From positions 64,108,001-64,172,000 of the forward strand of contig NC_083417.1 of NCBI RefSeq assembly GCF_020745735.1: a stretch of DNA of 64,000 nt, in the 5' to 3' direction. The notes beneath the pieces were generated by a model, which saw only the letters and a program-made list of their open reading frames with translations, was not told the DNA's origin and searched no databases. Source of the stretch: Hemiscyllium ocellatum. Taxonomy: Eukaryota. Both the position numbers and the translations under genes were made by a program. Each line of letters begins with the position of its first letter. The first letter of the stretch is position 1. Shown piece by piece: positions 21,021 to 51,377 of this stretch.

Positions 21021-21030
21021 CTACTCCTTT

Positions 21031-21292
21031 TGTGAAGCGTGGGATACTGAACAAGTATAATTGGCTTCACTTTGAACAGGGTGTGCCACAGATAAAGACC
21101 TGGAAACTTGGTAGAGTCTCTTAGTGTTCTGCACTTTAAGGTTCTATATTCCTAATACAGTTTTGACACAATTTTATACCAAGTTACCGAGATATTCTCA
21201 GAATATAACTTCGCCATCTCACACATGTGTCAAAAACACGTGTAAATTTCCTTCAGGTGAACTGGAAATGATCCCCAGCGGTGTTGGAGGCT
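21031..21292 (-). pseudogene. Gene A: Ig C1-set domain exon, frameshifted and 3'-truncated
   Basis: PPTPLGIISSSPEGNLHVFLTHV/(fs)C-EMAKLYSENISVTWYK/(fs)...RLYQVSRSLSVAHPVQSEANYTCSVSHAS shows the C1 motifs C..(F)Y(P)..I.VTW, Y..S..L and YTC.VSH. Homologous to 46028-46332. Confidence 0.85.
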
Positions 21293-21559
21293 TTGTGAAA
21301 TAGAACCTGAACTGCATCGAGTTATTATGTACAGTTATGAGAAAATACTAGGTTGTACGTGATGGTACAGTTTATGATGATAGTGTCACTCAAAACAGAG
21401 ACCACCAATCCTTGTGGTGTTAAAAGTGGTCATCTGCACATACTTCAAAGTGGTATCTTTGGAAATCAACATCTGCTCAGTTTTACTTCCACTAATTAAG
21501 ACCTGGGTTACTTGGCAGATCCAGTGACAAAATTGTTCCAAATCATAACAAGGCTCTTC

Positions 21560-23700
21560 AATGCACTGTGTTTGAGTAGGACCTTAGACATAATCATTCA
21601 CTTACTTCAGTCCTCCAACATTTTCCCACATCAATATACATTCTTCCAATTCACATGTTAGTCGAAAACCATTTTTCTAACATTTCCCTATTTGAGGTCT
21701 ACATTGATAGAAGGAGTAAAATTGAAACCACTGCATTTGCTAAGTCAGGAGCTTTTTATTTTACGACCGTACAGCCCTGAAATTCTCAATATCCTGCCTG
21801 TTTATACCTCCATCCTTTCATAAAATAATGGTTTCAACTTACTCCCGTCGTTTAACCTCCCGATTCATGCATATGACTGGGATGTTACTTGTGTCCTGTA
21901 CAGGAAAGTTTCTGAAAAATCAGTTTGTAAAGTAGCGAATGTGACTATTCTGTTGAAGAAAGGAAGCACGGAAGCAGGAAGCAGTAAATTTTAAGACAGT
22001 TAACATCTGGCATCTGTAAAAGGACGAGATATTTTGCTCAAGCGAACATAGGGAGTTTGGGAATATCTAAATTTTACCATGCAAAGTCAGCATGATTTTG
22101 TGAAAGAAAGTAAAGTTTGACTAACTTATTGGAGTTGTATGAGGAAATGAACAAAAATGGAGGTTTGGAGTGGCGCTATCATATCTCATCTCGCTCTTTT
22201 TTCGTCAGTATGAATATCCAACCTGTACAATCTACCTTAAAAAAACAACGAATGACCATTTTAATGGTTTCTATAACGTTGTGCATCCTCTTCAATACCA
22301 TTATATTCTTCCAAAAATGCGACACCCAGTACTGGATACATGACTGTGCATTTTACTTTGTCACTCTAAGCTCCTAACAAACATGGACCGAAGAGTCTAT
22401 TTCCATGCTGAACATCTCTGTGACTCTTTGACTCTATGTAAGATAAAGTTACTGGGCATTGAACTTCATCTATTTATCCGACCATCTTGCCTTCTCATAT
22501 TTATTCTGTTTATGATTGACAATATCCTCCTTGAAATTCATGACAGTTCTGAACTGCGCATTATCCAGTATAAAAAAGAAACCTGCTCAGTAGAAAAGGA
22601 TTCTCGTCATTAGCAAAAATAAAGTCTCAACAGTCATCCTGGGAAATTCTGCAACGTACATTTCTCCAATTCCAAAAACACTACTCATTTCTTTTTCCCA
22701 GTTCCTGCCTCGGCTCAAATTTGATTGCATGTTGCTACATTCCATGAATTGTAATTTAGCTCGCTCATCTGTTGTGTGCAACGATGTGAAGTAGCTTTTG
22801 AAACCTTATGAACACCACATTCATACCATTGCTCTTCTCAGCAACGTTAACTGTTGCAAAATACTCCAACAATTAGTTTTGCACGATTTTCCGTTAGGAA
22901 ATCCATGATCACGTTCTTTAATGAAGCCAATGTTTCCAAGTGACAATTAATTTTCGATCAAGAAATTGTTTCAAGAAATGTCCCTGCCAGCAGAGTTAGA
23001 TTGATTGTCCTTGTGTTGCTCGATTTATCTTTCTTTGTGTCATTCAACAGCAATATACTACTTCGAAGTTTTAGACCTCTGGTAACATCCCTGAGTCTAA
23101 TTGATGTACTGACATTGCCGCTGCGTTACCATTCTTATTTCACTTAGCAACATTGGATGTGTCACTTTTTGTATTGGTGCCTTTCACACGTAAGTAAGAC
23201 AGCATATAGAACACCTGCTCCTTCTCAGCTTTATACCTTGTTGTATCTAAATATTGTCCTGTTTCACTGCGGCCTGGATAGCATCTTCTTCCTCGATGAA
23301 GACAGTTGCAGAATATTAATTTAGCATCACAGCTATTTCTTCTCCCTTTATACGAAAGGTTTTTTTCCCATGAAATTTTCTCTATTCCTATTTTTTTTGT
23401 TACTTTACTCACACCTTCACCTGGAAAGTATATTAGTTTTCCATGTAAGTTCGCTGTCAGTATATTTTCATATTCCCATTTTGTTCCTCATTCTTGCATT
23501 CTCACCTGTCTTCTGAGGTTTTAATATTCAGCTTTGTTGGAACCGTATTTCCTGTCTGGCATTTGCCTAAGCAGACATGTCGCAGCTTCTCAATGTTTGG
23601 TGTTTAAGAATGGGAAATAACATTTAAAAACCTGTTGTATAATTGCTGTTCTGCATCATCGCATGTTTATTATGTATAGATGCACACTGAATATACCTGC
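21560..23700. mobile_element. Mixed degraded CR1 fragments in the gene A V-C1 intron
   Basis: CR1 RT-like stretches in both orientations (e.g. gcaaagtcagcatgattttgtgaaagaaag...ttgactaacttattggag). Confidence 0.55.
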
Positions 23701-24134
23701 TAATAAAGTGAAGCAGTTGATTCATAGGGAACTGATTTGATAGTCGAGCCAGACAACTTGTAAAATAATTTATATTCTGCTGAAACGCAATGGTTTAGGC
23801 AACAGAGTCTTTGCACAATTTTATTCACTGAGCTCCATGAAGTGATATTGTTACATGATTCAAAATGAGCTGTGAAACCCATATATTGTGAGTAGGCGAA
23901 ATAAGAAAAATGTGTTCATTACATCACATTCAAGGAATCTACTCTGAAAATTTGCTGTCAGAGATCAAGTATATGCATTGCCTTTACAGCACAAACTCTA
24001 ATTGCCTAGTATCATACATGCCGCAATAATCTCCATGCAATAGTGGATGCCAAAGAGGTATTTTTGTTGCTGTAAGTTATTCTTTATGGTCTATACCTTT
24101 ACGACCATTAGATTGCTCCTTCTTTCACACTTAT

Positions 24135-24452
24135 CATAAATAATTAGTTGTGATCCGGTTCCATTTCCACAAAATGTCCCTTGACACATCACTGTGCAGT
24201 AATAGATTCCAGAGTCTTTGAGAAATGCGTTCAGCAATTTGAATTTACTCAACCATTTGCTATTTATACTAAACTGTTCTCTAGCGTTATTGCTGTCTGG
24301 CAGGTATTCCGACTCACTCTGTTTCCACCAGCATACCCTTACACAAGAAGGATCCTGCGAGGTGAAGAATATGCAAAAGAACGTTATACTTTCACCACAA
24401 TGCACAGTCGTTTGTTTGGATGTCTGAATTACCCTGAACGAAACGCCCACAA
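24135..24452 (-). CDS. Gene A: germline-joined VJ-type Ig V domain exon (open; read-through stop at 24091)
   Basis: Acceptor tttctgacAG, phase 1, in frame with the leader. VGVSFRVIQTSKQTTVHCGESITFFC...VCWWKQ...FKLLNAFLKDSGIYYCTVMCQGTFCGNGTGSQLIIY has B-strand C, C-strand W, DSGxYYC and a J-like GxGxxL. 318 nt. The expected donor reads G|ATAAGT. Confidence 0.9.
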
Positions 24453-24854
24453 CTGTCAGAAATATAATGACATAAAGGCTCGTTGCGTGAGATCAACCTG
24501 GGGAAGCGAGAAAAACAAAACAAAAAAATCCTATAATGTGGTGTAGTATGTGAGGATAAGTGAGGGTTACTGGTGGTAATATGTGAGGTTTCTAGCGTAA
24601 CTGAAGGAAAAGTGTTGTGAAGTTAGAAGCTTTAATGTTCTATCACAGTCTAAGAATGTGTTCAAGGCAAGTGGGGAGAATGGGAGTCTCCCCTGGTCAG
24701 CTATACTTGATCTGGATTGGTGTCCCTTATTTTACACTCTCCAGAAATCTGCTATAGTCTGCCCTTAGAGGCGCTAGCGCTGGGCAGAGCAAATGAGAAG
24801 AAATTACTACGAAAACATTTGATAAATTTCCTATACCAATGAATAAAGATTTAC

Positions 24855-24909
24855 CTATGTTATCGAACCAGCATATAGCCAGATACAGAAGCACCAAGCT
24901 TGCTGTCAT
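24855..24909 (-). CDS. Gene A: signal-peptide exon
   Basis: ATG...MTASLVLLYLAICWFDNI+G|GTAAAT. 55 nt, phase 1, 402-nt intron to the V exon acceptor. Confidence 0.85.
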
Positions 24910-24944
24910 TCTGAGGAGCTGATTTAGTTGACCACTCTCTGCAG

Positions 24945-24983
24945 TTCCTGCGCAGTTACGACTGTTGAAAAGAATTTGTGGTT
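24945..24983 (-). promoter_or_regulatory. Putative proximal promoter motifs of gene A (ETS CAGGAA, RUNX AACCACA)
   Basis: TTCCTG at 24945-24950 and TGTGGTT at 24977-24983, within 75 nt of the ATG. Short motifs, motif match only. Confidence 0.3.
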
Positions 24984-25688
24984 AGTTTTGCTTATATTGT
25001 TTGGCAATGACGTTTTGTGTCAAATAGCTGCTGATTGACAGAATTTTTTTTGTTATGCTTTGATATTTCTCCATAATGTAAAATGGTTGAATTTGAATGC
25101 TATTAGTGAGAGAGAGTCGAGGAATTCACACCTAGAGATTGCAACAGAAAGGCAAATGGTAACAAAGTGTATTGTGAAGAATGCTTAATGGGGTTACAGA
25201 GAGATTTTTGCAGATATGTTGTGCGAGTGAACAAAAACTGCACAGACAAACGAACGTGCATCACAAATTGAAATTGGTAGGTACGATGCTGAAGTCATGA
25301 AAGAGAAGGCATCAAGATTGTGAACTTTATCTCCAAAGATAACAGGAAGCTATACTGTATTGGAAGGCATAAGATCTGTGCAGACAGAGTTCAGGAACTG
25401 CAAAGGCAAAAAGACCCTGACTGGTCTCTCCAAGCCATAATCTGGATGTGGAATACAAAATTAATCGGGGAGATAAAGCTATGCAAGAAAAGCCCTACTA
25501 CAACAGTCACAGGAGACTTCCATATACTTCCATATCAGGTTGCCATCGGACCACAAGAAAAAGAATTCAATGAATGTCGATGATGTGTTAAAAACCAGGC
25601 CAGACCCCCTTAAAACATTTCAAGAAACTAGCCTGGAGCTTAACTTTGTTAGTGGTTTTAAGAAGTTTTGCAGTGAATATTGTAGGAG

Positions 25689-26231
25689 TGTTACAACTGG
25701 CCAAACCACTTAGTTTTAAACAAAACAGAATTTTTTTCAAGATACCGAACGATATACAAATGAAATTGAACAGAATACAGAATGACTTAACCTATCTGAA
25801 AACCCAACAGCTTATCCCAACTTAATGATGATGTTCAAATTTCTGCAAGAATCACATAAACACACCTTGACAACAAATGTAAAATCAAGCATACTTTCCA
25901 ACAGGAGAGAGATGGGAAAGAAATTCAGCATGGAACACCTCCTTCCGTTTAACTGTTTCCAGGACCAGCAGTCACAAAACTGATTGATTATCAGCTCTCT
26001 GAACATCCATACTGCGAAAAGAAACCCTCCAAACCCAACCAAACCGAGCCAGAGTAAAGCTGAGTTGGGAGAACTGGTCATTCCTCTTTGATTGTGCAAG
26101 TGTTTTGTTTTAAAATTTGATGTCTTCCTCAGGTAGATCAGCCCTAGATATTTTGGAACCTGTGTCTTTACGACCTCCTAAAAAAAAGGACCACCACCAC
26201 CTAACCTTGATAAAAGAGAAGCATTGTCACA
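25689..26231. mobile_element. Solo LTR (Gypsy-type)
   Basis: 543 bp bounded by TGTTACAA...TTGTCACA imperfect inverted termini (TG..CA). No coding interior, no clear TSD. Confidence 0.6.
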
Positions 26232-26299
26232 GATGGTATTTTTGGAGCAGCTTGTGGTAAAACATACTGTGCCGTTAGGGTATTGTGGCATTTTAATGG

Positions 26300-28140
26300 G
26301 CTTCTGACGTTGAGGTGTTCAGTCACAATCCCACAGATGGTAGGTTCGCACTATGCATTCAGATGGTACTGGCTTTGTTGACATGTATTGAGGCTGAATT
26401 GATTAAGGTTCTTAAGGTGTCTAAAACCCTAGGTGTGGGGTGGGAGGGGGGAGGCTACAATATGATAGCATTCACCCTGCAGTTTGAGAGGAGGAAACTA
26501 GAGTCAAATATGACGGTGTTACAATTGAGTAACAGTATTTGCAAAGACGTGAAGGAGGAGTTTTCCAGACTTGATTGGAAGGGATCCTAGCAGGGAAGAT
26601 AGTGGAGCAGCAATGGTAGGAGCCGAGGGGTTAATTTAGGAGGCACAGCAGAAATTCATGCCAAAAAGAAGAAACAGACTAAGGGAAGGGCGAGGCATCA
26701 ATGGAACACAATGTAAACCAGGCACACCAAAAAAGCTAAAGTAAAAACACGCAATGTGGTGAAGATGAATGACAAGCCAAAGGACCAAGAAACCTTTAAG
26801 AACATAACAAATGACAACTGCAAATACAATCGGGGGGAGAAGATGAAATGTAGCGACCAGCTAGGTAGCAATACAAAATGAAATTTTAGCAGATTTTTCT
26901 TTGATGTATAAAATGCAAGGGGAAGGCAAGAGAGGAAAATGAAGGTAAATAAAGAACAATGGGAACAAAGAAATAATTGAATGATCTAAATTGATACTTT
27001 GCATCAGTCTTCATGGTGAAAGACACCAGTATCATAGCAGAACTCCAAGAGAGTCAGGGGTAAAAGGTAAGTGTAGCGGCCATTACCATAGGGACGGTGA
27101 TGGCGAAACTGAAATGTCAGAAGGTGGATCAATCACCATGACCAGATGGGTTACACCATTCTGAAGAGGATAGCTCAGGAAATTGTGGTGATCTTGCAGG
27201 AACACTGGAGACACCAACAATCCCAGGGGACTCGAAAATGAGTAATGTAATATTCGCTTTTAAGAGGGAAGGGAGACAGACAATGTGAAATTATTAGCTG
27301 ATTAAAGTCCATTACTAACAGCTTGAAGTCCATAAAGAAAAATGATATGATTAACTAGAACCGAGTAGCCACAGTTTCGTCAAATGGAGGTTATGTCTGG
27401 AAAACTTTGGTAAAATTCTCTACAGGCTGGAACAAGTTCGACAAAAGGCAGTCAGTGTTCTTGATCTATTTGGATTATCAGGAAGCTTTTGACAGTGTGC
27501 TGCACAAGCAGATAATAAATAAGACAAGATCCATGCTATTAGGGGCAAGGTACTGGGATAGTACTTTCCAGCACTGAACTCTCGACTATAACCATTTATG
27601 TTATACATAAACAGTCCAAACAAAGGAACTGAGGGCATTGACGCTACGTTTGCAGACAACACCAAGATGAATAAAGCGGCAGGTACTATTGAGGAAACAG
27701 CGTGGCTCTAGAAGGACTTCCAAATGCCAGGACAGTGGGGAAAGAGGGAGATGGATTACAATATCAAAAGTGTGAGGTTATGCAGAATAGCAAGTTTTGA
27801 AAATTTGAAGCACAAGGGATTTAGGAGTCCTAGTTCAGGGTTTTCATGAGGTTAACATGTAGCTTTAATTGCCAATAGAAAGGCTCATGCAATATAAGCA
27901 CTAACGTAGAGAGGGCTGGCATACAAAAGCAGCGATGTACTGCTGAAGCTCTACAAGGTTCTGGTCAGAGCACATATTGAATATTGTGAGATGTTTGTGT
28001 ACCCCATTTCGAATGAATGATGTGCTGGAATTGGAGTGGGTTCAGAGGAGGTTCCCAGCAATGATCTCGGGAATGAATGACTTGTAAGATGAGGAGTGAT
28101 TAGGGAGGTTTTGCTCTGTACTTGATGGAGTTTAGAAGGA
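26300..28140 (+). mobile_element. Degraded CR1 LINE ORF2
   Basis: EN/RT remnants, e.g. ggaagcttttgacagtgtgctgcac (AFDxVPH) and tttgcagacaacaccaag (FADDTK). Confidence 0.75.
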
Positions 28141-28164
28141 AGGGTCTAGGGGTTCTGGTTCTCA

Positions 28165-28747
28165 ACGTCTCTTCTTCCTCAGGCAACTGAGAAAATTTGG
28201 CATGGTGGTGAATGCCCTTGCCAACTTTTATAGGTGCTACATCGAGGGCATTCTGTCTGGATATCTCCGTATCACTATCTGGTATGGCAACTGTATCATT
28301 CACGATCAGAGATGGTCACAGCGAGTGGTGAACTCGGAACAGACAATCACAAAGGCCAACCTCCCATCTATAGAATCCATCTACCAGGCCCGCAATTAAG
28401 GAAAGGCCACAAGCATTCTCAAAGATCCACCCCATCCTGACAATGCTTTTCTACAACCTCTTCCATCGGTGAGAAGTTGCAAAAGATTGAACACACGCAC
28501 CAGCGTGTTTTGAAACAGTTTCTACCCTACTGTTGTTAGAATATTGAATTTATTCACAAACTCTTAGCATTTGTCTGTACCTGTGTTTTGGTTTTTGCTG
28601 CTATTTACCTATTATTTTCTGATCTATGATATGTAACTATGTGATCTGCTTGTATTGCTCACAAGATAAAGCTTTTCACAGTACCTTGGTACACGTGACA
28701 ATAAATGTAATACATGAAATTCATTCATTCAATTCAATTCATTCATT
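28165..28747 (+). mobile_element. Rex1/Babar-like LINE 3' fragment
   Basis: FFLRQLRKFG...NFYRCYIEGILSG..ITIWYGNC motif. Ends in an (ATTC/AATTC)n tail. Confidence 0.75.
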
Positions 28748-29419
28748 GTGCGGAGAGAACATAAGTGTCTGACAGACTTAATTAAGTTTTCGGAGGAAAT
28801 AACCAAGAAGATTGATGAGGGCAGAGCAGTAACTCCGTCAGTGAGGGGGATTGTACGACAAATGTGGAATATAAATAACCTCTGAAGAGCACCAGCTTGA
28901 CATCGAGGAAGTAAACAATGCCAACTTCACAACTTAAATAAATGGAACTAAATAGCGATGATAGAGAAAATTGAAATTAATTCACACATAAAAAAAAGGG
29001 AGGAGGGACAGAGACAAATGATAAGGTAAAAGTGGAATGAGAATATGTTTCGTAAAACCTTAGTAGTTTCGGCAGGCTTATTGAGATGTGAACGCAATTG
29101 AAATTCAGTTTTATTATGGAATTTGAATGGAGGCTGCTTTATTAAGTAGAAGAGGTAATTTAGATATATTTAGTGTCAGGGCAATGCATTTCATTTCAGA
29201 ATCAATCTCCTGTTTAAAACACACTTGAATGGGATGTGTGATAGTAGATGCAGATCGGAGGTCATTGTAATAGGTCAAAGGGGAGTACGGAGTCTATAGG
29301 TGAATAGGGAAATGGACAGATAGGCAAGGTCAAGAAGGCTGTGATGAATTACTGAGTTGGATCTAAGATGTGGTAAGGGCTAGGAGATATGGAAACTGGT
29401 GAAGTCAATGTTTAAACCG

Positions 29420-30110
29420 TGTGATTGCAGGGTCCTAAGACAGAAGACAAGGTGCTTTTTCTCCGCCTCATTTACTGCATCTTTTGCTCTCGATGTGGTC
29501 TCCAGCATATCAGGGAGACTGACTTCCAACTCATGGAACTGTTCAGCGATCATCTCTGGCCTGCATGCTCAAAACAACCCCACCACCCTGTGGCCAACCA
29601 CTTAAACACACCCTCCCTCTCCCCCACATTCATGCAAATCCTGGGCCTCCTCCACCTCCAAATCAAAGCCACCCACCGATTGGGGGAAGATCACCTTATT
29701 TTCCACCTGAGAACCATACAACCACGCAGCGTTAACATTGACTTCATAAATTTCCATATCTCCCCACACCCCAGTTCATCCCAGATCCAACCCTCCAACT
29801 TGGAAATGCCCTCTTGACATGACCTACTTGTCAATCTTCCTTCTCACCTATCTACTCCACCCTCCTCACTGACATAATCGCCTCCTACCTGCATCCACCT
29901 ATCGCTATCTCATCTACCCTTGCACCAGCCCCACCCAAACCTCAATTTATGTCTGAGCCCCCTTCTCTCTTCAGATTTCTGATGAAGAGTTAAGGCCCAA
30001 AACATCGAATCTCCACCTCCGCGTTGTTGCCTGACGTGTTGTCCATTTTCCAGTGCCACACTTTTCGACTGTGACTCTCCAGCATCTGCGACCCTCACTG
30101 CATCCAACTG
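29420..30110 (+). mobile_element. Penelope-like element 3' fragment
   Basis: YCIFCSRCGLQHIRETDFQLMELFSDHL (GIY-YIG remnant), followed by the terminal repeat ending ccagcatctgcgaccctcact. Confidence 0.82.
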
Positions 30111-31379
30111 GAGAGATTATAATCATTTCCCCCTGCAGTCCAATACGTTAAACATCACTGAAATCTTCACAAACTGCATCCTTGGGGTTTTCATTGGCCA
30201 GAATTTGAAGTGACCCAAACATACAATCGCTATGTTAACAAAAACATCTGTGCAGTGCAAATTAGGGATATTTGTTGAAACGTTGGGCAAATCAGAAAAT
30301 TCAACTTCTACTGTCCATAACCTTACACACTATCACACAATTTCCAGCGTGTATCTTTCCTCGACCCCTATTAATGTTATGAAACCATGTACACTCCCAC
30401 AAAAGTTAAAAAGAGGATGCGGATATGAAACAAAATTATTTCCCAGTTCACGAAAGCATTTCTAAGTTTCCTAGTTTTAAGTTACCATTTGATCTAGTAC
30501 CCTAATTTCCTTTTGTCAGAACCTATGAATCTTATTTACCATTTCAATACAAACTACAGACACTAAATGGAGACAGTTTGGAAGTGCACATAATGGGAGA
30601 ATTCTAATGGAATCAACGTGATTTGTTTCTGATGTGTCATTAATTGTACCAATAGTAAATGCTTAACTCCAGAATAAATCACTTTTGCAAAACCAAAATC
30701 GGTCTCTATTGTGAAAAAACAGTCCATCCATGTGCCGCCTATCTCACTCCACTTCTGACACAAACACAAAAATGTGCACAGCCTGTGCACTCCTGGCACA
30801 AATAGACAAAAAACAGAGAGAGAAAAAGCTGAGATAGATATATTCTTGATCAGAGAGGGTGGGGTCTGGAGTTTATATAAATAGATAACAAAGTGGACCT
30901 AATGAATGTTGAATCAGCTATGATCCTATTGAGTGGCAGAGCAGGCTCGAGGGCCGAATAGCCTCCACCTGTTCCTATTTCTTACAGTCGTTTGCTCCAA
31001 AAGCAATGTCGTCACTTTCAATTAAATGTAAACAGGAAACGATATTATATTGTTTCCCTTCAATTTGAGAAGAAAAGACTGAACCATTTTAGAATGTCGG
31101 TAAATTTCTATAACTGTATTTTAGCAATGCCATTGTGACCTTTAAATGCCATTTACAACAACTGCAATAATTACCTGTCTTCACAGTCACATTAACAAAA
31201 GTATTCATTCCGTTTTCAGTGTTTTGACACTAAACATTCTATTCAACTTTTTAACAACAGTAAAACAATGAACGTCATGAAACAGCCACATAAGAAATAC
31301 ACTACAGTGATGCTGAAACATAAATCCAACACAGGAAGTTCCCCACAATGATATTTCTTTTATATTGTTAAACATGTTA

Positions 31380-31693
31380 GGCGGCACGGTGGCACAGTGG
31401 TTAGCACTGCTGCCTCACAGTGCCTGTAGACCCGGGTTCAATTCCCGACTCAGGCGACTGACTGTGTGGAGTTTGCACGTTCTCCCCGTGTCTGCGTGGG
31501 TTTCCTCCGGGTGCTCCGGTTTCCTCCCACAGTCCAAAGATGTGCGTGTCAGGTGAATTGGCCAAGCTAAATTGCCCGTAGTGTTAGGTAAGGGGTAAAT
31601 GTAGGGGTATGGGTGGGTTGCGCTTCGGCGGGTCGGTGTGGACTTGTTGGGCTGAAGGGCCTGTTTCCACACTGTAAGTCTAGTCTAATCTAA
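31380..31693 (+). mobile_element. Full-length young shark SINE (HE1-like)
   Basis: Pol III A box TGGCACAGTGG, B box GGTTCAATTCC, (CTAAT)n tail. Nearly identical to the copies at 48972 and 52053. Confidence 0.93.
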
Positions 31694-37144: not shown

Positions 37145-37280
37145 GTCATTCCTGATGAAGGGCTCCTGCCCAAAACGTCGATTTTCGGGCTCCTCAGATG
37201 CTGCCTGACCTGCTGTGCTTTTCCAGCACCATCCTAATCTTGACTCTGATCTCCAGCATCTGCAGTCCTCACTTTCTGCG
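37145..37280 (+). mobile_element. Penelope terminal-repeat fragment
   Basis: cattcctgatgaagggctcctgcccaaaacgtcgattttc...ccagcatctgcagtcctcact. Confidence 0.7.
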
Positions 37281-38339: not shown

Positions 38340-38640
38340 ACAATATACACTCTGTCACACACGCAATCACACACAAACACACATCCACACTCACCTTTAA
38401 CATACTTACATAGTATTGCAGACACTGTCTCATCCACACATTCTCTTTCTGACACATACACACGCACGCGCACACACACGCACACACATCACACTCACAT
38501 CCGTATGCACACCCTCTCACAGGCTTATACACAATCACATTCATGCACAATCCTATCAAGCATGCACACGTGCACGCCCTCCCTGCGCTGATACGCACGC
38601 ATACACTCACATTCAATCTTGATCCCACACACTCTTACAC
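38340..38640. repeat. Degenerate (CA)-rich low-complexity tract
   Basis: About 300 bp of cacacacg/catacac variants. Confidence 0.8.
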
Positions 38641-40424: not shown

Positions 40425-40770
40425 TAAGAGATGGAATTTGAGCAAATCATGCCAATTGGCTTAATTAGATTAGATTCCCTACAGTGTGGGAACACCTTCG
40501 GTCCATGAAGTCCACACCGACCCTCCGAAGAGCAACTAACCAAAGTAATTTCCCTCTGACTGATACACTTAACGCTATGGACAATTTGGCACGGCCAATT
40601 CATCTAACCTGTACATCTTTGGATTGAGGGAGGTAACAACACCACAGGAGGAAACCACGCAGACACAGGAGAATGTGCAAACTGCACACAGACAGTCGCT
40701 CGTGGCTGGCATCGAATCTGGAACCCTGGCGCTTTGGGGCAGCAGAGCTGACCACTGGGCCGCCGTGCAA
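40425..40770 (-). mobile_element. Older shark SINE copy
   Basis: Reverse complement has the A box (gcacggcggcccagtgg), the ttgcacattctcctgtgtctgcgtgg body and an (aatct)n tail. Confidence 0.8.
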
Positions 40771-40899
40771 TTAATTTGTTTCTACACAAAAAAAACATAA
40801 TTTAGTGCACAGTGATGACCATGCTATATACATAAAAACGATGTACTTACCCAATAGTAATGCACTTGGGAAGTTTGAAACTGGCAAAATTATGAATTA

Positions 40900-41670
40900 T
40901 GGTGGTAAAGAATGCTTATGGAATACTTTCCTTCATAGGATAGGATATGAAAGATGAAAATAATGTATTCGTCAAAAACAGATACCCCCACAATTTCATC
41001 AATAGATGACTAAGGGAAAGACAAGGGAATGAGGACGGGCCACAACCCAAAGGACTAGCCACGTTATAATACATCAAGAACATCTCTGAACTGACAACCA
41101 GACTACTACACCAATAGGACTCATGACAGCACACAAACCAACAGCCACTCTCAGACAACAACTCAGCAGGACAAGGACCTGATACCCAGCATGAGCAAAA
41201 CCAACGTAACGTACAAAATCCCGTGCAAGGACTGCACAAAACACTACATAGGACAAACAGGAAGACAGCTAACGATCCGTATCCATGAACACCAACTAGC
41301 CACGAAACGACACAGCCAGCTATCCTTAGTAGCCACAGACGCAGATGACAAGAAACATGAGTTCGATTGAGACAACACTACTATTACAGGACAAGCCAAA
41401 CAGAGAACAGCCAGGGAATTCCTAGAGGCATGGCACTCATCCACAGATTCTAGCAACAAACACATCGACCTGGACCCAATATACTGGCCACTGCAGCGGA
41501 TAGCTGTAAGTGACAACCAGAAGCGGCAGAGGCAAAGGCAATTCACAGGTGGCTCCCAAGCACTCAGGATGTCACCTAACAGGGGACGAAACGTCACAAC
41601 ACAAATTCCCAGCTCGGCGAACAGAACCACAACAACGAACAGCCGAGCTGCAAATCTTCTCACAAACTTT
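40900..41670 (+). mobile_element. Penelope-like element (second family), GIY-YIG region
   Basis: NVTYKIPCKDCTKHYIGQTGRQLTIRIHEHQLATKRH is a clear GIY-YIG endonuclease. Confidence 0.9.
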
Positions 41671-44600
41671 GAATACTGGTGTAATTTCGAGCTGTGTGAA
41701 ACGCCAGATGGATCATAAATACATATGTTGCATAGTTTTAGTCACCACATTACAGAAAACTTATTACTGTTTTGTTGACAGTACGGAAGGAATTTGCAAC
41801 AACGTTTCAATGGATTTTAAGCATTAACTATGGAAAAGAGTGAGAAGTCAGTGTAGTTTCCGTGAGTTCAGCTGATTTGGACTTTGACTGAATTGAAATT
41901 CATAAGCTTAGAGGAACCTAGTTAGAATAGGATAAATCTGTTCTCCCTATTGGAGAAACAATCATCGATCTAAAATATTTTTTAAAGAAGGAATAGATGG
42001 AAAACAGGAAAAGAAAAAATATCCAGCAATGTCGAATGTCTGGAATTCGCTGCCTTGTTTAGCAATGGAGTGAAAGACCCTTAACTTGTTTAAAACTTTT
42101 ATGGACCCTCAAGCACCCTGAAAGAATGTCAAGGAGATAGCTTAGATCCTAACTTTCATATTTGATGTAAAGGCAAGTGAAAGAAGCTGTGTTACAAATG
42201 TGATTTCACTAATCAACTACTGGACTTTAAACAAAATATACTTCAATTTTACAACACAGTAAAAATAGAAACGAAAAGAAGAATTGGTATATCTTTAACC
42301 GTATCAAAATACATTACAAAATAAGGCATTTTTAAAGTATGAAACATCAAATATTCCTATATACAAAAACCCATAAACACACCCTCAGCAAACGCAAACT
42401 CAATAAGACAGGATTTCCTTACTTGCTATCTCCTCAGGTCCAGGAGAAATGAACACCTAAGGAATAATCGAGCAGTAGAGATAGAACTCAAGCTTTTTTT
42501 CTGCATCAGAGAGCTAGCTGCATCAATAAGCCTCAATAGCCTGCTGTACACCCCAACTAAAGTCAAAAGTAATGCATTGGGTCTGTGTGAGCCTGACTCC
42601 ACTCACTCATGCATCATTTGTCTAACTGAGAAAGGGCGTTCAGTGTGGTGAAAGTTGTTTACCCACTATGATTGAAGAAGATACTTTGGCACCAATATGG
42701 CAACATTGTTCTGCAGAAGAAACACCAAAGAAGATATCTCACTTAAGAGGACAGTAGCTTCACAAAACATACATGAATCTGCACTCGAAGTACTGTAATT
42801 TTTAAGACCACAAACAAATGTTTGAAGATGGGACATTACTGGGAATGAGCTTGAATTCTGGCGTGGATCAAAACACTGAATGATTTTCTTCTTTCTAAGG
42901 GCATTCTATGATTTCTATCGTCAGCAGCTCAATGGCATGCTTTAGATCCTTCCAAACAGATAGCGGGAAATAATTTGAACCGAATTGGGTGCATTTTACA
43001 AAGTCTCTGAAGGATGAAATGTCAATGCAAAAAATACGTTCAGAAATGTTAAAGTTGTTTACACGCTACCTTTGAAGCAGATATTCTGACAACAATGTGG
43101 TAACACCGTTCTGCAACTTTCGTGGAAGTTGTTAACTAAGATGATATGCTGAAAATATATAGCTTACTGCAATGCAAATGATACTGTCAAGCATATTCAA
43201 TAATACACTTGCATTTGCAGCATTTGTCAAGATAAACTCACCATTCACATTCTTGATCAAATTGCATGCTTACCTGTTGTCGGTCTTGCAGAAAGAAATG
43301 CATTTCGGATTTCTTCCTTTGAACAAAATTGATTATGGAAATACAAGACAAATTAAAATTTAAAGTTGTCAGTGATGCTCAAATCTTATGTCTGAATAAA
43401 GATGAATCTCATTTGCCGGAATAAGTATCTTCATCACAATCTGAGAAAAGTTCAATCGAAAATCTGCACCTGTCTGTGATTCCCCAATTTACAATGCCAT
43501 CTTGTGCCGTTACTCAGTCAGGCGAAAACACAGTGAAGAAGACAAAAGTTAAAATGTCTTCACATGAAAAATTGCCTCTGCTTCAAATATTTTGTGTAAG
43601 TAATAGCAATCCTGCTCTTATTGCAGCTTGTGTCTGATTTCTGGATATCAAGAAGAGTATCCTAACTATTTCTATTGTAGCGCTTGTGGCAGATCAACTT
43701 TGAATAACTAACTGTCCGTGATTCAATGATCAGCACGAATTGGCGATTTGTGATTTCTGGCAATTTTATGTATTTCCAGATCTTGTGTTTTTTTTTTATA
43801 CTGTCGTTCCGTCAATATCGTCTCCATAGCCTCATACTGACAAGTTCAGAACACAGAACATCAATTTTCACTTCAGGACGATGATTTCCTGTTCTACTGG
43901 ACCAGGCTTCTAGCTTGAACCCTGCACTGTCTTTAGATTTTCAGTCTGCTTTCTGACTGCAAGTACTGAGCATAAACAGGCATCTATTCACAACTTGCAG
44001 TTGGGAGCTATTTTCTTTGACTTCTACCTCATGATTAATTTTATGAAAAGACTGTTTCCTTCTCAAAATGTTTGCAAGCATTGTTGTTGAGGTTTATCTG
44101 CACTATTACCAAAAGTCCACTTTAAAACTATGCAGCATTGCCCTCTGATGTTATTGCTTTGCTGCCACCCTGCAGTTTCCTCAGATAAACTAACTATCTG
44201 CTGCCCATGACCAAACTTTGAATGAGTCACTTCACCCATCAACTCGGTATTGCTATCCACCTGTTCCCTATTTAAGGAATGCCTTGATTTTGAAATCCTC
44301 ATTTTTGTTCTAAGATCTGGTAATTCAATCAGAAAATATCAAAAAATTCCAACTTTTCTAACCCTGACCTCCTGAGTATCCGCACATTTATGAGTCCCTG
44401 TAGCTCACTGGGGCCCAAGGCTTTAGCTGACACGGTTCCAAACTCGATGCGTACCTCCTAAAATCTTTCTACTTCACAACTTCACTTTCTTCCTTTAAGA
44501 CACTACTTAAGAACAACTTATGTGACGAGTTTTGCTCTTTTATTTGCTTCAGTGATAAATAATGCATTTTAAAGTTTTTAAGAAGCTGCTTGAAAAGTTT

Positions 44601-44881
44601 TACTTCGTTGAATGTGCTGTATAAACACAAACATATGTTGTTTTAGCCCACTGATAATTTAGGGACTCTGTGTGACCAGGCGATTTTTGTTGATGAAGTG
44701 ACACTTGATTTCAAGGTCTGCTGGAAAACAGAATCGACCTAGTCAAAAATCGTTTCTTTTACACGAAATGACAAACACATTTCATAACTACGTGTTTCAT
44801 GTTTAAAAGATTATTCGAAGCTCTATCAGCGGCAAACAAAATGTGAGTGCAGTCAGACATCAATTGAAGCTTTAGCACAGA

Positions 44882-44942
44882 ATGTCGGTCGTTGAGATGT
44901 TGCTCTTCATGTTATTGTTGCTGTCAGGTCTAATTTACACAG
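44882..44942 (+). pseudogene. Gene B: signal-peptide exon
   Basis: MSVVEMLLFMLLLLSGLIYT+G|GTATCT, phase 1. 152-nt intron to the acceptor ...caaactAG. Confidence 0.85.
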
Positions 44943-45094
44943 GTATCTTCTTTCTCTCTCCCAGATCTTACCTCGTATCAAGTAAATTAACTGTAGTTCG
45001 TTCTCTTTTGTATTTCCGTGCAGAATTTCGCTCTTAAATGTGTGGTTTTGTATAGAATACAATTAATTAACATGAAGCAGTTATTTCAAACTAG

Positions 45095-45412
45095 GCGTAA
45101 CAGATACTTCCACTAGCGTATCTCAGACTCCCAAAGAGGCAACTATACTAATGGGTACAGACATCATCCTGTATTCCATCTTGCCCCGTTCTCATGACAA
45201 TTCAGCAGTCGAGGTCCGTTTGTGGAAATGAGAGAATAAGTAGCTACAAGCAGGAGTAGACAACAGGAAACGTATTGGTCTCAAAAATAAAGGAGGTGGT
45301 TTCTTGGATCTGCGAAATGCGACACTTCATGACTCAGAATTCTATCATTGTGAAGTATTCCATCAGGGAAATTTAAGCGGGAATGTAACTGGAACCAAGC
45401 TAACTGTCTGTG
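45095..45412 (+). pseudogene. Gene B: germline-joined VJ-type V exon with premature stops
   Basis: VTDTSTSVSQTPKEATILMGTDIILYS(C->S, TCC 45175)ILP...VRLWK*ENK*LQAG...FLDLRNATLHDSEFYHCEVFHQGNLSGNVTGTKLTVC. Stops at 45229 and 45241. 318 nt. The donor reads G|ATAAAT. Confidence 0.88.
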
Positions 45413-46027
45413 ATAAATGATGGAGGAACGGAGTGTTTGGGATGCTTTGTTGTCAATGCTCTGCTGCGCCATCTTTGATATTTTATGTCATATTAATGTT
45501 TGCTGTATGACTCTTTACACAACTCTTAAAAGCACCTGAGGTTTTCTTTGCTATGGTGCTTAAAGCAGCGTGAGCATCAACCCGATTGTGGGATATGTAT
45601 CAAACGTAATGTTATGTTAATTCTGGAACTCTGAAATATAATACTTAACTGCTGGAAATTCTTATCGAACCAGGTTGAGTCTGTACACTGTAAATTTATC
45701 AGGTTATAACTTTAATAGGTTGGATGTTGCCATATTCAGTGCAAAATGTAGCTTTAATTTCATGCGCTATGGTTTTACTACCATCCTTCCTTGTTGTAGG
45801 TTCCTCAGCTCTTTGTTCCTGGACATACAGGAGCTTCGATGTCCCAACCAGATAACCTGCCAATCTTATAAATTTCAAAAGTTTTCACTCACTTTTTTTT
45901 TGTGAGCTGGAAACACACCGAACGGTTGTGCTTTATAAGGGCAGATCAATAAGAATATCGTTCTTCTCCAGTTTCTGATGCTCAACATCTGTCCAGCAAA
46001 CAAATTTTCTCAATTTTCTGTTTGCGG

Positions 46028-46332
46028 TTGTTCCAACCCCAATAAAGATTAACCGCAAGCCGCTCGCACACAATTCATCTAAGTCTCTGATTCTCTAATG
46101 TGAAACGTGTGCATTTCATTCGGGTGGTGTAATTATCCTTTGGTACAGAAATGACACTACTATCAGAAAAGAGATAAACACGTTAAAAAGCAGAACGCTG
46201 AAGGACTGTACGAAGTTGTCAGTGCTTTGGAAGACTGGCAAGCTGAGCGGAATGAGTTTTTATTATGTCTTTTTGGTAACACATTTCCTCCTCCCGACTC
46301 CTGCCATTGCCAGTCAAAAAGTGACCAGTCAG
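46028..46332 (+). pseudogene. Gene B: Ig C1-set exon, decayed
   Basis: VPTPIKIN...SLIL*CETCAFHSGGVIILWYRN (C-x13-W), then after a frameshift KQNAEGLYEVVSALED, then LVTHFLLPTPAIAS. Donor CAG|GTATGT intact; acceptor reads CGG. Confidence 0.85.
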
Positions 46333-46928
46333 GTATGTGGCCAACAGGCCAAGGAATTAAGTCTGCAATTTTTAACTATTTTTAGTTTATTCAAATGATT
46401 AATCATGAAGATAGCTATGAAGTAACTAACTAGAAACAACAGAACCAGAGGATCTGTTCATGCAAAACAATAATTACACAATAAAAGATAAGAAGTAGGA
46501 AAGGAGTAGGCAATTATGCCCCCACCAAACATGTTTAGCCATCAATAAGATATAGACAACTACCTACATCACTTCAAGTTTTCAGTCTCATCCCCATATA
46601 CCTGACACCCACAGTATCTACGATGCTGTTTCTGGGCATATCTGGAGTCTCCTTGTCAACGAGAGTACAGAATGTCAGATTCAGAACATTTGAATAATGC
46701 CATTCCTGCTCATCTCAAAAGTAAACGGCCGAACTCTTAATTAATTATGACATCTCTGCCTAAATTCTCAAAATAGAGGAAATTCCCCATTGATCTCCTT
46801 TAGTTGACATGAAATAATTCATTCGAAGGTGTTGAGTTATTGCAAATACCTTGGTGTTACCAAGAAAAGATTCTTGGAACATTTTTGAAAACCACGACCT
46901 TTAATCTATATTCATATTACTTTTGCAG

Positions 46929-47042
46929 ATTATGGTGGCACGTCCATTTACTACTAATATTTCAAGTACATGATGGGTGGACTAGTGTCGTTACTACTCC
47001 TAATCATCATCAAGCTGCACTGTCAAGTTCCAAAAGAGAACG
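46929..47042 (+). pseudogene. Gene B: transmembrane exon with in-frame stop
   Basis: Acceptor ttttgcAG, donor G|GTAAGG, 114 nt, phase 1-1: DYGGTSIYY*YFKYMMGGLVSLLLLIIIKLHCQVPKEN. Confidence 0.8.
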
Positions 47043-47160
47043 GTAAGGCATAATGTATAAATTTGATTTTATTACAAAACTACTGATACTGGAAAGAGAA
47101 AATCTGAGTGTCCACCCATATGCAAGAAGATTCTATTGGAATTAATGTTTTCTATTTCAG

Positions 47161-47184
47161 ACAGGCCAAACACAATTGTTCCAA
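47161..47184 (+). pseudogene. Gene B: candidate 24-nt cytoplasmic mini-exon
   Basis: Strong acceptor ttttctatttcAG. Phase 1-1 open (DRPNTIVP). Weak donor GTAGGA. Confidence 0.35.
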
Positions 47185-48971
47185 GTAGGAATAAATGCTT
47201 CACTCAATATATTATAGTAATCACATAAACATGTCAAAAATGGACTTGAGTTTCTCCATTTGCAACTGAAATGTTTGCTCTACAGCATTCACTAAATGTC
47301 TGCGTCCTCACGCATTACTGTTTTCATGCAGCTGGTTTTGGAACCATAGTTCTTTCTTTATGAAGCCTAGGTGGATTCAGGCCTGAAACAATTGCAGATA
47401 TTAAAAGCTCTTACAGGGTCTGAGATGTCTAACACTGTCAAAAGAACCTGAAATGAATTAATTAGGTTCTAATTCGTATTTACTTCGGAAGGGTCTTTGA
47501 AGCAATCGCCATTGGACGTAAGTAAATTATTGAAGAATTTGTTATAAGAGCAATGCCTATTTAATTGCATTAACTTCCACGTTGAAACCGCAGTGTTTGC
47601 AAAGTGTCACAGCGTTTGGAAGAAAAGAGTCATTAGTTCATGCAGCTCCATAAAGGTGTGAATTATAAATGTAAAATGATAGCTACAATGAGTAAATGTA
47701 TCGATGTTTAGATCAGATTAGATTAGATTTGATTTATTATTATTGTCACATGTACCTAGGTGCAATGAAAAGATTTGTTTTGCTTGCAATATTCGAAGAT
47801 CATAACATATCAAGATCACAGGGTGATTGAACAGAGGATCAAGTTGATTTTGCAAAAACAAAATCGGTCCCGTCCATCGAAGGCAACTTTCTCCCCTACA
47901 CCTTTCCTGCCCCTGTTACAAACAAATATGAGGAGAAAGAAACAGCGCCAATTTAATTGGAATCTAAAAAGTTTACCATGCTAAATACCTTTTATTTTTA
48001 TTTAATTTAGAAACCAAGCTTAAGTAATACATGTTCTATGAGGTTTAGAAATGTAACTTTTTTTTGTAACTGCCCTTTAGCGAAACAGTTGATTTGTTTA
48101 AATATTTATTATAATGACCACTGTAATAACCTGCCTTCATTTTCACATCTACTTACAGTATTCAGTTTTGTGCATTATCACAAGAGTAAAGTGACAATAG
48201 AAAATTAAATACATGAGATATGCTTTTTCAGGGTCATTTAGGAATTAAAGGGTAAAAATGTTATTATCCCACTGTAAACTGGAGCAGAACCGTGTAACCT
48301 CTGAGACTTATTCATGATAAGGGCACATCAGTACGTACAGTATTAATGTGGTACACTCATATGGTAATGAGAATCAAACATTCAAAGATCACCACAGTAA
48401 CGTTTTTATTCCAGTGATAGCAAGCAATACTAAATTGGCAGCAAGCAGTCCTGTCGTGACATTCACCTTCACTTCACCTCCACTTACACCCCCTTCCACC
48501 ACTGATGACTTCTTTGAACAAAAATCAGAAAGAGAAATGATAAGAGCACCAGTTAACAAACTTTTAAACATTAATTGGCAGGTCCATCATGTATTCCACA
48601 TGAATCCAGATTTGCCAGGCTCCAAATGAAAATTCAGAATGAAAATGTCAACTGATGAAACAGTCACTTGCTGATGTATTAAAATATTGATTTTAGATTG
48701 TAAATGTTGGGAATTGATAAATGTGTGTGTAAATTTCAGTTGTTCACTTGTAATAGCATGAACGTTTCTAGGACTGCTTGAAGATGCTGAAATATTTAGT
48801 AGAGTAAATTGAGCTGGCTGTTAAGTGAGTGTAGTATAAATTGTCAATAAAAATACACGTTGTTATATCTCTCTTCTATCAGTCAAATATGTGTCCTCTC
48901 GTGAGTCATATTGCAAAGCTTTGGTTTGACGTGCATTTTGCGTTTTGATATGTAGAAAAGATTATGCTTTT

Positions 48972-49086
48972 CGGCACGGTGGCACAGTGGTTAGCACTGC
49001 TGCCTCACAGCGCCAGGGACCTGGGTTCGATTCCCGCCTCAGGCGACTGACTGTGTGGAGTTTGCACGTTCTCCCCGTGTCTGCGT

Positions 49087-49117
<31 letters not shown>

Positions 49118-49283
49118 ACAGTCCAAAGATGTGCGGGTCAGGTGAATTGGCCATGCTAAATTGCCCGTAGTGTTAGGTAAGGGGTAAATGTAGGGGTATG
49201 GGTGGGTTTCGCTTCGGCGGGTCGGTGTGGACTTGTTGGGCTGAAGGGCCTGTTTCCACACTGTAAGTCTAATCTAATCTAAT
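48972..49283 (+). mobile_element. Full-length young shark SINE (HE1-like)
   Basis: A/B boxes and (CTAAT)n tail. Near-identical to the copies at 31380 and 52053. Confidence 0.93.
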
Positions 49284-50711
49284 TTGGATCCTACAATTTA
49301 TGAGCTAGATCCCAAACACATTACATGTATTCCTTTTCCATATGACTGTCTATGTGCACTAAAATGTTCATGTAATTATTAGGTTCGAGCATCATAAATG
49401 CCAAAGCTAAGTGTATTTGGCATCAAAGGAAAGAAATTTTAAGGGCTTTTAACACCAACTTGTGAACTAGGTAGAGTATAGAATTCGGCAAAACAAGTCA
49501 TTGCAAATTTTAAAACATTTGTACTGGTGATTGTACCTTGGTTTGGCCTGGGCTGCCTCATTAGCTGAAGAATAGCCAATTATTATCATGCATAAATTCT
49601 GAGTTATATAAGAAGTATGTATTATGAACTGCAAGGCTGGAACTTTATGAAACTAGTTAGATTGTCGGATTTAACAAGTCTTTCATGAATTAAAAACGTT
49701 ACATTAGAAATTGCGGGGTGAATTAAGTTCGTGACATCCTTAAAACCCTCCACCATGTCAGTCAAACGCGAATTTTCTTTAACAAATTTACGTTGGCTTC
49801 ATCTAACTGGATCATTGTAAACTTGTCATATTTAAATAAGTGCCTGCATTTTTCAAATCACGAATGGAAATCCAACATTATGTAGTTACTGTTTTCTCAC
49901 TTATACAGTAGGGTAACATTTGCTTCTATCTAATCTGCTGGAAACATTCTAAAAATGTGTAAAAACTTGGAAGACGATCAACATTGCACTATCTCCATCG
50001 TTATTCTTTGTAACTAGAGAAAATGGGGCCTGGAAAGTTATCAGTCTTCAATCCCAATAGATCTGTCAAAACAAACTTTTCACTCAAGTAATTTCCTTTA
50101 ATTCATTCTATTCATAGTCGTTTTGATCTCTAATTCACCTATTGCGTCAATTTTATTTTCTTCCTCCATACCCATACACTTTTCTACCGTTCTTTATTAG
50201 TGTACTAGTTGTCTCTTTATTCTAAAATACTCCAAATACTAAGTTTATTATTATTTCTTAATGAAACCAGCATTTTCTTTTAATCTTTAAAATAATTAAC
50301 TTACGTTGATAGTGATAGACGACTAAGTTTCATTGATTTTTGTTTCTTGACAGAATATATGGTTGCAGAATATGTAACCATTCTTTAAGAACTATACATT
50401 GCCCATGCACCATCCAACATTTTGATGTTTTTCTTTTCCAGATTCGTCGGTCAATTTAACCCCAAGCCTACTTAATTTCCTCTGTTCAAGTTTAACATCC
50501 TGGCTTCAGATTGGACTGACGAAATTTCAAATTTTGTATACTAATCAATAATATGATGATCACTCATTCTCAAACATTCATTTACAATACAATTGTTGAT
50601 CACATTTTAGTCAGTTGCTCAACATACTTCTCCAGAATGCCAGTCCTACATATTGTAGAATCTCATCTCTACAGAATTAGAGCTCATTAGGTGTACCACG
50701 TCTATACACAG

Positions 50712-50721
50712 AGTGATGTCA
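50712..50721 (+). promoter_or_regulatory. CRE-like decamer AGTGATGTCA upstream of gene C leader
   Basis: Exact fit to the AGTGAYRTCA decamer known from TCR V-beta promoters, 75 nt upstream of the ATG at 50796. Confidence 0.35.
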
Positions 50722-50795
50722 TATTTGGTTTCGTGTTTAGGTTAGGGTTATGTTTATCTGCAGTGAAACTGGTTGCAACATGTTTCCTTGTTCAG

Positions 50796-50850
50796 ATGCA
50801 TTATTTTCAAGTAACAAGCATTCATTTATTGGTTTTCTTCTCTAACGAAG
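50796..50850 (+). pseudogene. Gene C: candidate signal-peptide exon
   Basis: MHYFQVTSIHLLVFFSNE+G|GTGAGT. 55 nt, phase 1, same length as the gene A leader. Confidence 0.55.
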
Positions 50851-50937
50851 GTGAGTCTACTTTCAGTTAATATTCTACAAAACATTGAGAATGCATGTAA
50901 ATAAATTTCTAACAATCTATATTTTTTCTGTTTACAA

Positions 50938-51135
50938 TGGCGAATCACTATTTCACTAGTGTAATGACAAAGTGAATATCATCTACAAGATAAAATCCTG
51001 CAATGGATCAAAATTTTCTCAGCAGAAATACAAAACCTCCACGCTTTTAGAATACTTCAAAAAATTGGACTCTCCTACACAGATTTCTTGGCTCCTGTGT
51101 GGTCCATTGCAAGAGGGACTTAGTTTTCACATGAA
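50938..51135 (+). pseudogene. Gene C: highly decayed, N-truncated C1-set remnant
   Basis: SLV**QSEYHLQDKILQWIK aligns position-for-position with TLVCxxxxFYPxxIxxxWxK (C-x13-W; W at 51004). Then SAEI..KIGLSY..FL.PV and LV(S)H. Confidence 0.5.
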
Positions 51136-51273
51136 GTCTAGAAAGATAAATTAAGATTATTTAGGGCTGCAAAGATTTTAAGCCAAGATTAACTAATAAA
51201 TAGCATCGATATCTCTTTTTAGAAAGTGACAAGAAATGAAATAAAACTCAGCACTAATTGTATAATCTTGTAG

Positions 51274-51377
51274 AGGCTGATCGTAAATATCATTACATTA
51301 CGAGTCTGGACGTGCTGCGGGTGGATTGGCATTTCTGGTAGTCACGTTCACCAAGAGAAGGAAAGTCAATCTGAAGA
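51274..51377 (+). pseudogene. Gene C: transmembrane exon, frameshifted
   Basis: Acceptor atcttgtAG. EADRKYHYIT/(fs)SGRAAGGLAFLVVTFTKRRKVNLK shares the GGL TM motif and basic stop-transfer cluster with the gene B TM exon. Confidence 0.6.

Follow-up and report, generated by a model that had tools for sequence, protein, structure and literature searches.

A 64,000-nucleotide stretch of the epaulette shark (Hemiscyllium ocellatum) genome (GCF_020745735.1, NC_083417.1, positions 64,108,001 to 64,172,000 of the forward strand; hereafter the window, in whose own coordinates all positions are given) very probably holds the wreckage of non-rearranging immune-type receptor genes that belong to a multigene family of cartilaginous fishes, in the form of two broken gene copies, termed A and B, and loose exons. 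Both copies have a leader exon, an exon for an immunoglobulin (Ig) domain of the variable type (V) that ends in a J-like strand, and an exon for a C1-set domain. Gene A lies on the minus strand and gene B on the plus strand, head to head and facing away from each other as originally predicted, with 19,973 bp (about 20 kb) between their start codons. The two belong to different sub-lineages of a large chondrichthyan family, and it is this membership that marks them as ordinary debris of fast-turnover immune genes rather than hidden working genes. Both copies are presumably untranscribed or non-functional.

Exon anatomy and lesions of genes A and B

With the open reading frame (ORF) around GNGTGSQL, which belongs to the V exon of gene A, as query, a profile search (HMMER) of 1.84 billion representative proteins returned 133 clusters with E-values up to 0.001, of which 50 have E <= 1e-10. 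Profiles of the V, C1 and transmembrane (TM)/cytoplasmic parts, made from 59 family proteins and run on the window, recovered exactly two V and two C1 exons, one strong TM exon and one cytoplasmic exon. When the whole window was cut into 400-bp tiles and each tile of either strand was compared with the profiles in a way that allows for frameshifts, the four Ig exons of A and B scored 203–307 against a background of 30 +/- 4.6 (top background tile 54.9), that is, 35–60 standard deviations above it, and no further V or C1 exon appeared beyond A and B. The exons of the two genes are homologous to each other (alignment z = 27 for V and z = 14 for C1, relative to shuffles), as the original prediction had assumed. 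Other searches did not show this homology: with A's V as query, tblastn on the window failed to pick up B, owing to the stops in B, and a DNA self-comparison of gene A with the rest of the window gave repeats only, the paralogs being too diverged for blastn.

Each V exon is exactly 318 nt long, in-frame J-like strand included, and has a phase-1 leader exon upstream. A six-frame motif scan reads the V exon ends as GNGTGSQLIIY in A and GNVTGTKLTVC in B, both in frame, which agrees with the germline-joined J-like strand proposed earlier. Since this strand lies within the V exon and no heptamer–nonamer recombination signal occurs anywhere in the window, the genes are non-rearranging, and their assignment to the VJ-C1-TM kind is upheld. 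The exon that follows is likewise of the predicted C1 type. It carries YTCSVSH and, visible only after frame correction, C-x13-W in gene A, and YxVxSxL in gene B.

Lesions were mapped by frameshift-aware alignment, and splice sites were read against an intact gene of Chiloscyllium punctatum (GCC26423, in locus L001 = BEZZ01000124.1). The V exon of gene A has neither a stop nor a frameshift, keeps its acceptor (...CTGACAG), and retains Cys23, Trp41 and DSGIYYC. Its donor reads G/ATAAGT (a slash marks the exon–intron boundary) in place of the G/GTAAGT of relatives. Two intact L001 exons have A/GTAAGT and G/GTAAGA, and the read-through predictions of other members spell G-K-C after V (GGTAAGTGT); from both it follows that the donor GT of gene A has been lost (GT>AT). 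The C1 exon, in turn, shows frameshifts near 21227 and 21175, a TAG stop at 21146-21144 and a premature stop right after VSHASQKE, and it lies one nucleotide out of phase with the frame coming from the V exon. Nine of the 11 family hallmark residues are still in place, so the decay is not ancient. Downstream of gene A, profile scans of the window yielded no TM or cytoplasmic exon and a hydrophobicity scan for a TM exon gave nothing convincing; a fragment of a long terminal repeat (LTR) retroelement occupies the expected place of the TM exon.

Two peculiarities of A's V exon may be recorded separately. Five cysteines occur beyond the canonical pair (VHC, PSC, RVC, VMC, TFC), two of them in the F–G loop, where they recall the extra disulfides of IgNAR V domains, drift being an equally possible source. 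In addition, a perfect heptamer of the recombination-signal type, CACAGTG, is found at 24190-24196 on the minus strand. It starts at the third base of the Cys104 codon, covers the codons Cys-Thr-Val and falls within a few codons of the heptamer site in rearranging V segments. No nonamer follows it at 12 or 23 bp, and because CTV is common in the family, the heptamer is probably a by-product of the coding sequence.

Gene B is broken in all exons after the leader and at two splice sites as well. Its V exon has stops at 45229-45231 and 45241-45243, Ser in place of Cys23 and LW in place of WW, lacks the first G of the J-like GxG, and ends in the donor G/ATAAAT (GT>AT). In the C1 exon, the acceptor has changed from CAG to CGG relative to L001, a stop stands at 46096-46098, frameshifts occur at 46177-46178 and 46263, and the F-strand Cys has become Phe; the donor GTATGT is retained. 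A and B thus share a G>A lesion at the first donor position of the V exon (24135/24134 and 45412/45413), despite their different sub-lineages and an identity of otherwise ~30%. This may be a coincidence, or donor loss may be a common first step in the family.

Table 1. Positions of receptor-family exons and other features in the window (L001 entries refer to the C. punctatum locus; i-E, independent E-value).
Feature	Position	Strand	Details
Gene A leader exon	24855..24909	-	ATG, 18 codons + 1 nt; intact phase-1 donor G/GTAAAT
Gene A V exon with germline-joined J-like strand	24135..24452	-	318 nt; profile i-E 4e-33
Gene A C1-set exon, broken	~21021..21293	-	profile i-E 3e-13; frameshift-aware alignment to P0002
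Gene B leader exon	44882..44942	+	ATG, 20 codons + 1 nt; phase-1 donor G/GTATCT
Gene B V exon, broken	45095..45412	+	318 nt; profile i-E 2e-26; lesions relative to Chiloscyllium P0014
Gene B C1-set exon, broken	46028..46332	+	profile i-E 5e-16
TM-type exon 1	46929..47042	+	114 nt; profile i-E 1.1e-4
TM-type exon 2, decayed	51274..51384	+	blastn to C. punctatum TM exon and intron
Terminal cytoplasmic exon, intact	1623..1760	+	TM/cytoplasmic profile i-E 3.3e-5
LTR-retrotransposon fragment, reverse transcriptase RNase H domain	20318..20866	+	Pfam RT_RNaseH E 5e-24
Short interspersed repeat copies	31465-31635, 49054-49224, 52141-52215	-	match P0025 C-terminus
Short interspersed repeat copy	L001:26771-26854		match P0025 C-terminus

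A chondrichthyan receptor family and the placement of its broken copies

The 30 clusters that were looked up come from sharks, rays and the chimaera Callorhinchus, except for one teleost. Most matches are proteins of 220–410 residues. Those whose sequences were read have a TM segment after V and C1, and many of them also have tyrosine motifs. Intact members are built from a leader, a V exon of 318 nt that includes the J strand, one C1 exon and a TM exon, and many end in tails with immunoreceptor tyrosine-based inhibitory or switch motifs (ITIM/ITSM). In the family proteins P0002, P0014, P0024 and P0046, Pfam assigns a single V-set and a single C1-set domain, and the structures of the L001 gene and of the window genes have a single C1 exon. 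V–TM members without C1 also belong to the family (Callorhinchus P0017, Narcine P0013). Annotated representatives include Mustelus asterias XP_078066559, Scyliorhinus canicula XP_038661932, Chiloscyllium plagiosum XP_043563364, Stegostoma tigrinum XP_059507523 and Callorhinchus milii XP_007902825.

Genes A and B have in common with this SIRP-like V-C1 family the exon plan as far as C1, a C1 exon that opens with PPTPL, and the motifs WWK, DSGxYxC, GNGTGSxLxV, LVCxTAxFYP, LTWYKNG, GLYEVSS and YTCxVSH. Family members have a TM exon (GGL, a hydrophobic run and basic residues); gene B is followed by two such exons, TM1 and TM2, both damaged, and gene A by none. The one exon with ITIM/ITSM motifs in the window (1623..1760) is part of a neighboring gene. 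The window copies differ from the family members in being pseudogenes or fragments, and gene A has no close annotated ortholog: the best relative of its V domain, Mustelus XP_078066559, reaches 50% identity (51 of 102 positions in a lesion-free alignment to Mustelus P0002).

The names given to these proteins in RefSeq are inconsistent and range from SIRP-alpha-like (PTPNS1-like), SIRP-beta-1-like, tapasin-related-like and NCR3 ligand 1-like to Ig lambda-1 light chain-like, MHC class II beta-like and uncharacterized. Within a single set of four proteins (P0041, P0172, P0169 and P0046), the labels include 'HLA class II DRB1 beta chain-like', 'H-2 class II A-D beta chain-like', 'HLA-DO beta-like' and 'immunoglobulin lambda-1 light chain-like', so automatic naming is unreliable here. 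The last of these labels is borne by an epaulette-shark member, which confirms the suspicion that such genes are mis-annotated as Ig light chain-like. No paper dedicated to the family was found in the literature collection searched.

In the V tree (100/94) as well as in the C1 tree (95/88), B is sister to Chiloscyllium XP_043563364 and GCC26423, and its clade otherwise follows the species tree, with Scyliorhinus and Mustelus, then Heterodontus, then the rays. A's C1 groups, at 98/90 support, with genes of Mustelus, Scyliorhinus and Stegostoma; its V sits on a long unresolved terminal branch (0.81). A and B are true paralogs in different sub-lineages. Word-indexed searches seeded for each sub-lineage listed no epaulette-shark protein and, for A's group, no bamboo-shark protein either. 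As another epaulette-shark family gene is present in the same database, this hints that both sub-lineages possibly survive in the epaulette-shark genome only as dead copies.

From its domain set and motifs, a working member would be expected to bind a ligand through its V domain, and its phosphorylated tail would recruit SH2 phosphatases and so give an inhibitory signal. Tandem arrays of such receptors would turn over by duplication, divergence and loss through point lesions and transposon insertion, that is, by birth and death. Gene A would fit this course with its pristine leader and V exon, the loss of its V donor, C1 frame and TM exon, and the LTR fragment in the place expected for the last. 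The claim of a multi-copy birth-and-death family has held up, with the 50 clusters at E <= 1e-10 spread from Callorhinchus to sharks and rays, dead copies here and intact annotated relatives elsewhere. The array of the bamboo shark C. punctatum extends beyond GCC26423: another intact V exon of the family, again with a canonical donor, is present 9 kb downstream on the same strand (L001:26225-26518). The portion of the locus examined has no C1 exon after it.

Alternative readings and further features of the window

Several points weigh against taking both copies simply for debris. The frameshift calls come from one assembly only. The leader and V exon of gene A have no lesion in 373 nt, as opposed to four or five in the 270 nt of its C1 exon; with an even spread, the chance of all of them falling in C1 would be ~0.01–0.05, which leaves some room for selection on a V-only product of gene A. 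The identity of B to the Chiloscyllium gene, moreover, is 71% at the nucleotide and 63% at the amino acid level, compared with at least 90% between the epaulette and bamboo shark genera for the family gene XP_060694223. B may thus be a true ortholog that died long ago within an orthogroup that evolves fast, or else a paralog of greater age. The flanks could not be used to establish orthology with C. punctatum: the alignable sequence is confined to the exons with ~90 bp of intron and to the TM exon.

The concentration of gene A's coding lesions in C1 is also what gives a small chance to its survival as a V-only gene. The leader would be spliced to V and translation would read through 14 codons to a stop, with a secreted V domain of ~138 residues as the product, or else V would be joined to a distant exon by way of a weak phase-1 donor situated 6 nt beyond the lost one. 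The open leader and V frame fits such a product, as do the intact leader donor and V acceptor, the retention of 4 of 4 invariant and 7 of 9 near-invariant family positions (11 of 13), an AlphaFold model with a confident V-type fold (predicted local distance difference test, pLDDT, 91) and the precedent of the V–TM members that lack C1. On the other side, the five extra cysteines and the long terminal branch suggest relaxed constraint, and B, which is certainly dead, has the same donor lesion. Protein searches turned up neither an annotated product of this kind nor a close relative of it in any shark, and a word-indexed search of A's V reading frame against a 90%-identity protein collection gave no match and no annotated protein. 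With so many C1 hallmarks kept, the death of the gene may moreover be recent and its open V frame a matter of chance. On balance a V-only gene A is unlikely. Far less credible is the hidden cluster of three working or near-working VJ-C1-TM genes missed by annotation from which the analysis set out. Exon order, orientation, phases and spacing are all right for it, but the lesion maps contradict it with at least five disabling lesions in A and at least nine in B, and sequencing errors do not explain the lost canonical cysteines and three lost splice sites. The window scan shows no third V or C1 exon and no TM exon for A. With all C1 exons and B's V broken, neither A nor B can encode a V-C1-TM protein, and the idea of hidden working receptor genes had to be given up.

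Apart from A and B, the wreckage includes two TM-type exons on the plus strand, and their assignment bears on the third exon set, C, of the original prediction. The paralogous sets A and B stand; set C does not stand as a V/C1 set, and its one possible trace is the decayed TM-type exon 2, which lies near the end coordinate (51377) of the original prediction. TM-type exon 1 lies 0.6 kb downstream of B's C1, the usual short distance. It has an intact acceptor (CAG) and donor (GTAAGG), keeps the hydrophobic core MMGGLVSLLLLIII and contains one in-frame TAA (46955-46957). In the TM scan of the window it is the top tile (72.6 vs 26 +/- 5), and its best match is the TM of Scyliorhinus P0003. TM-type exon 2, the second-best tile (45.1), is 69% identical (E 1.7e-5) to L001:13750-13890, which covers the C. 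punctatum TM exon and 77 bp of upstream intron. Its translation, when the frameshift is bridged by an X, shares 50% identity with the TM exon of Heterodontus P0160, a member of B's sub-lineage. One nucleotide has been deleted from it, its hydrophobic core is spoiled (LVVTFTKRRK), and its donor is gone. TM-type exon 2 is either the TM exon that first belonged to B or a last remnant of a third copy in the tandem array. In the latter case, B would be V-C1-TM1, and a further copy C would have been reduced to TM2 by deletion of its V and C1. The presence of two TM-type exons on one strand, the position and good splice sites of TM1, and the fact that TM2, not TM1, shares intron and exon DNA similarity with the Chiloscyllium TM exon all speak for such a copy. 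It is nevertheless the less favored solution, although a serious one, as a profile scan and sensitive blastn detected no V or C1 remnant at 47.1–51.2 kb and duplication of the TM exon alone fits the same data. V candidates for a third set at 48.0 and 50.5 kb were discarded, with tile scores of 49.6 and 34.7 within background and negative hidden Markov model scores.

At the left edge of the window, the terminal cytoplasmic exon has an AG acceptor and 45 open codons with an ITIM-like LTYATV and an ITSM-like TEYSEI before its stop. It is the top tile of the cytoplasmic scan (78.3 vs 26 +/- 4.6), shares 51% identity with a Heterodontus SIRP-alpha-like tail, and is the last exon of a plus-strand family gene that lies left of the window. 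Matches to the C-terminus of family protein P0025 at 31.5, 49.1 and 52.2 kb were rejected as family exons. They belong to an interspersed repeat, which suggests that in P0025 this repeat has been exonized and the protein mis-predicted. Finally, a GC-richer block on the plus strand (15500-17230; 46% GC, GC skew -0.33) with overlapping ORFs of 144–213 codons and one FLDL-type motif is probably a decayed retroelement; its ORFs gave no Pfam match.

Taken alone, the window is a minor addition, in that two pseudogenes and stray exons are added to a receptor family predicted in databases. Its value is as a record of family turnover, in which two sub-lineages with intact members in other sharks are represented here by dead copies only. 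The documented routes of loss are splice-site loss, C1 decay and transposon insertion, and V-only remnants arise on the way. The family itself consists of non-rearranging V(J)-C1 receptors that extend from chimaeras to sharks and have so far received automatic names only.

Comparison with known receptor systems

By sequence, A's V resembles V-NAR and T-cell receptor (TCR) V domains (E ~1e-5 to 1e-6), with V-NAR as the best PDB match (E 4.8e-6). By fold, it is equally close to CD79b, NCAM D1, TCR/Ig V, NKp30, SIRP-alpha D1 and CTLA4. PDB profile searches proved not discriminating, as multi-domain chains dominate them. The V-C1 model of the nearest intact relative (pLDDT 90.6) is best matched by SIRP-alpha D1-D2 in terms of the template modeling score (0.75–0.76, at 23–27% identity), and it also matches B7-H6, PD-L1, tapasin and Ig kappa light chains, with E-values that agree within about tenfold in each library. 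The fold searches do not clearly separate SIRP-alpha from other VJ-type V domains or V-C1 units and were set aside as a means of family assignment. Given such near-equal matches, 'antigen-receptor-like' and 'SIRP-like' are fair descriptions and not family assignments. These models speak neither for nor against the special kinship with the ancestor of antigen receptors before RAG that was originally suggested: the V-C1 unit is about equally like Ig light chains, SIRP-alpha D1-D2, B7-H6, PD-L1 and tapasin.

Among the known systems, SIRP-alpha and SIRP-beta share with the family a V domain with a J-like strand, a following C1-set domain and, in many members, tails of the ITIM/ITSM type. They differ in having two C1 domains, compared with one in this family according to Pfam and gene structure. 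The short V domain, whose G strand bears GNGT, also resembles that of NKp30 (NCR3), and of the 12 best fold matches in Swiss-Prot, four are NKp30 orthologs. C1 is absent from NKp30, however, and signaling goes through a charged TM residue, whereas a C1 exon follows both V exons in the window. IgNAR, for its part, rearranges, and the similarity to NKp30 and IgNAR is at the generic level of VJ-type V domains. The window is also unlike rearranging Ig/TCR loci, given its J-like strands in frame inside the V exons and the absence of heptamer–nonamer signals.

The PRARP genes described in papers including Fu et al. 2019 (J Immunol 202:1992) reportedly have a non-rearranging VJ exon, a C1 domain that is degenerate in birds, a TM segment and a cytoplasmic ITIM. 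They are said to occur from bony fish to birds and to be linked to the major histocompatibility complex. As far as the citations of this work in PMC10751288 and PMC11599192 describe it, PRARP would be the system closest to the family in architecture. UrIg and UrIg2 are non-rearranging, antibody-like genes of sharks, and the solved UrIg2 construct has the domains V-C1-C2-C3 and forms disulfide-linked dimers (PMC12227049). The combination of a non-rearranging V(J) with C1 in elasmobranchs is common to them and the present family, and UrIg2 (PDB 9dmx) is the second-ranked match to the family C1 profile. The family differs in its V-C1-TM arrangement, single C domain and signaling tails; the text on UrIg/UrIg2 mentions no ITIM or ITSM (PMC12227049).

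The bearing of the family on the origins of antigen receptors will hinge on its phylogeny relative to PRARP, SIRP, NKp30/B7H6 and UrIg. One may speculate, with considerable doubt, that it is the cartilaginous-fish branch of PRARP-type VJ-C1-TM-ITIM genes descended from an unsplit antigen-receptor precursor, and that the gene A copy was turning into a free, cysteine-rich V domain after loss of C1 and TM. If this were true, the array would record the interconversion of V-only and V-C1 receptors through exon decay.

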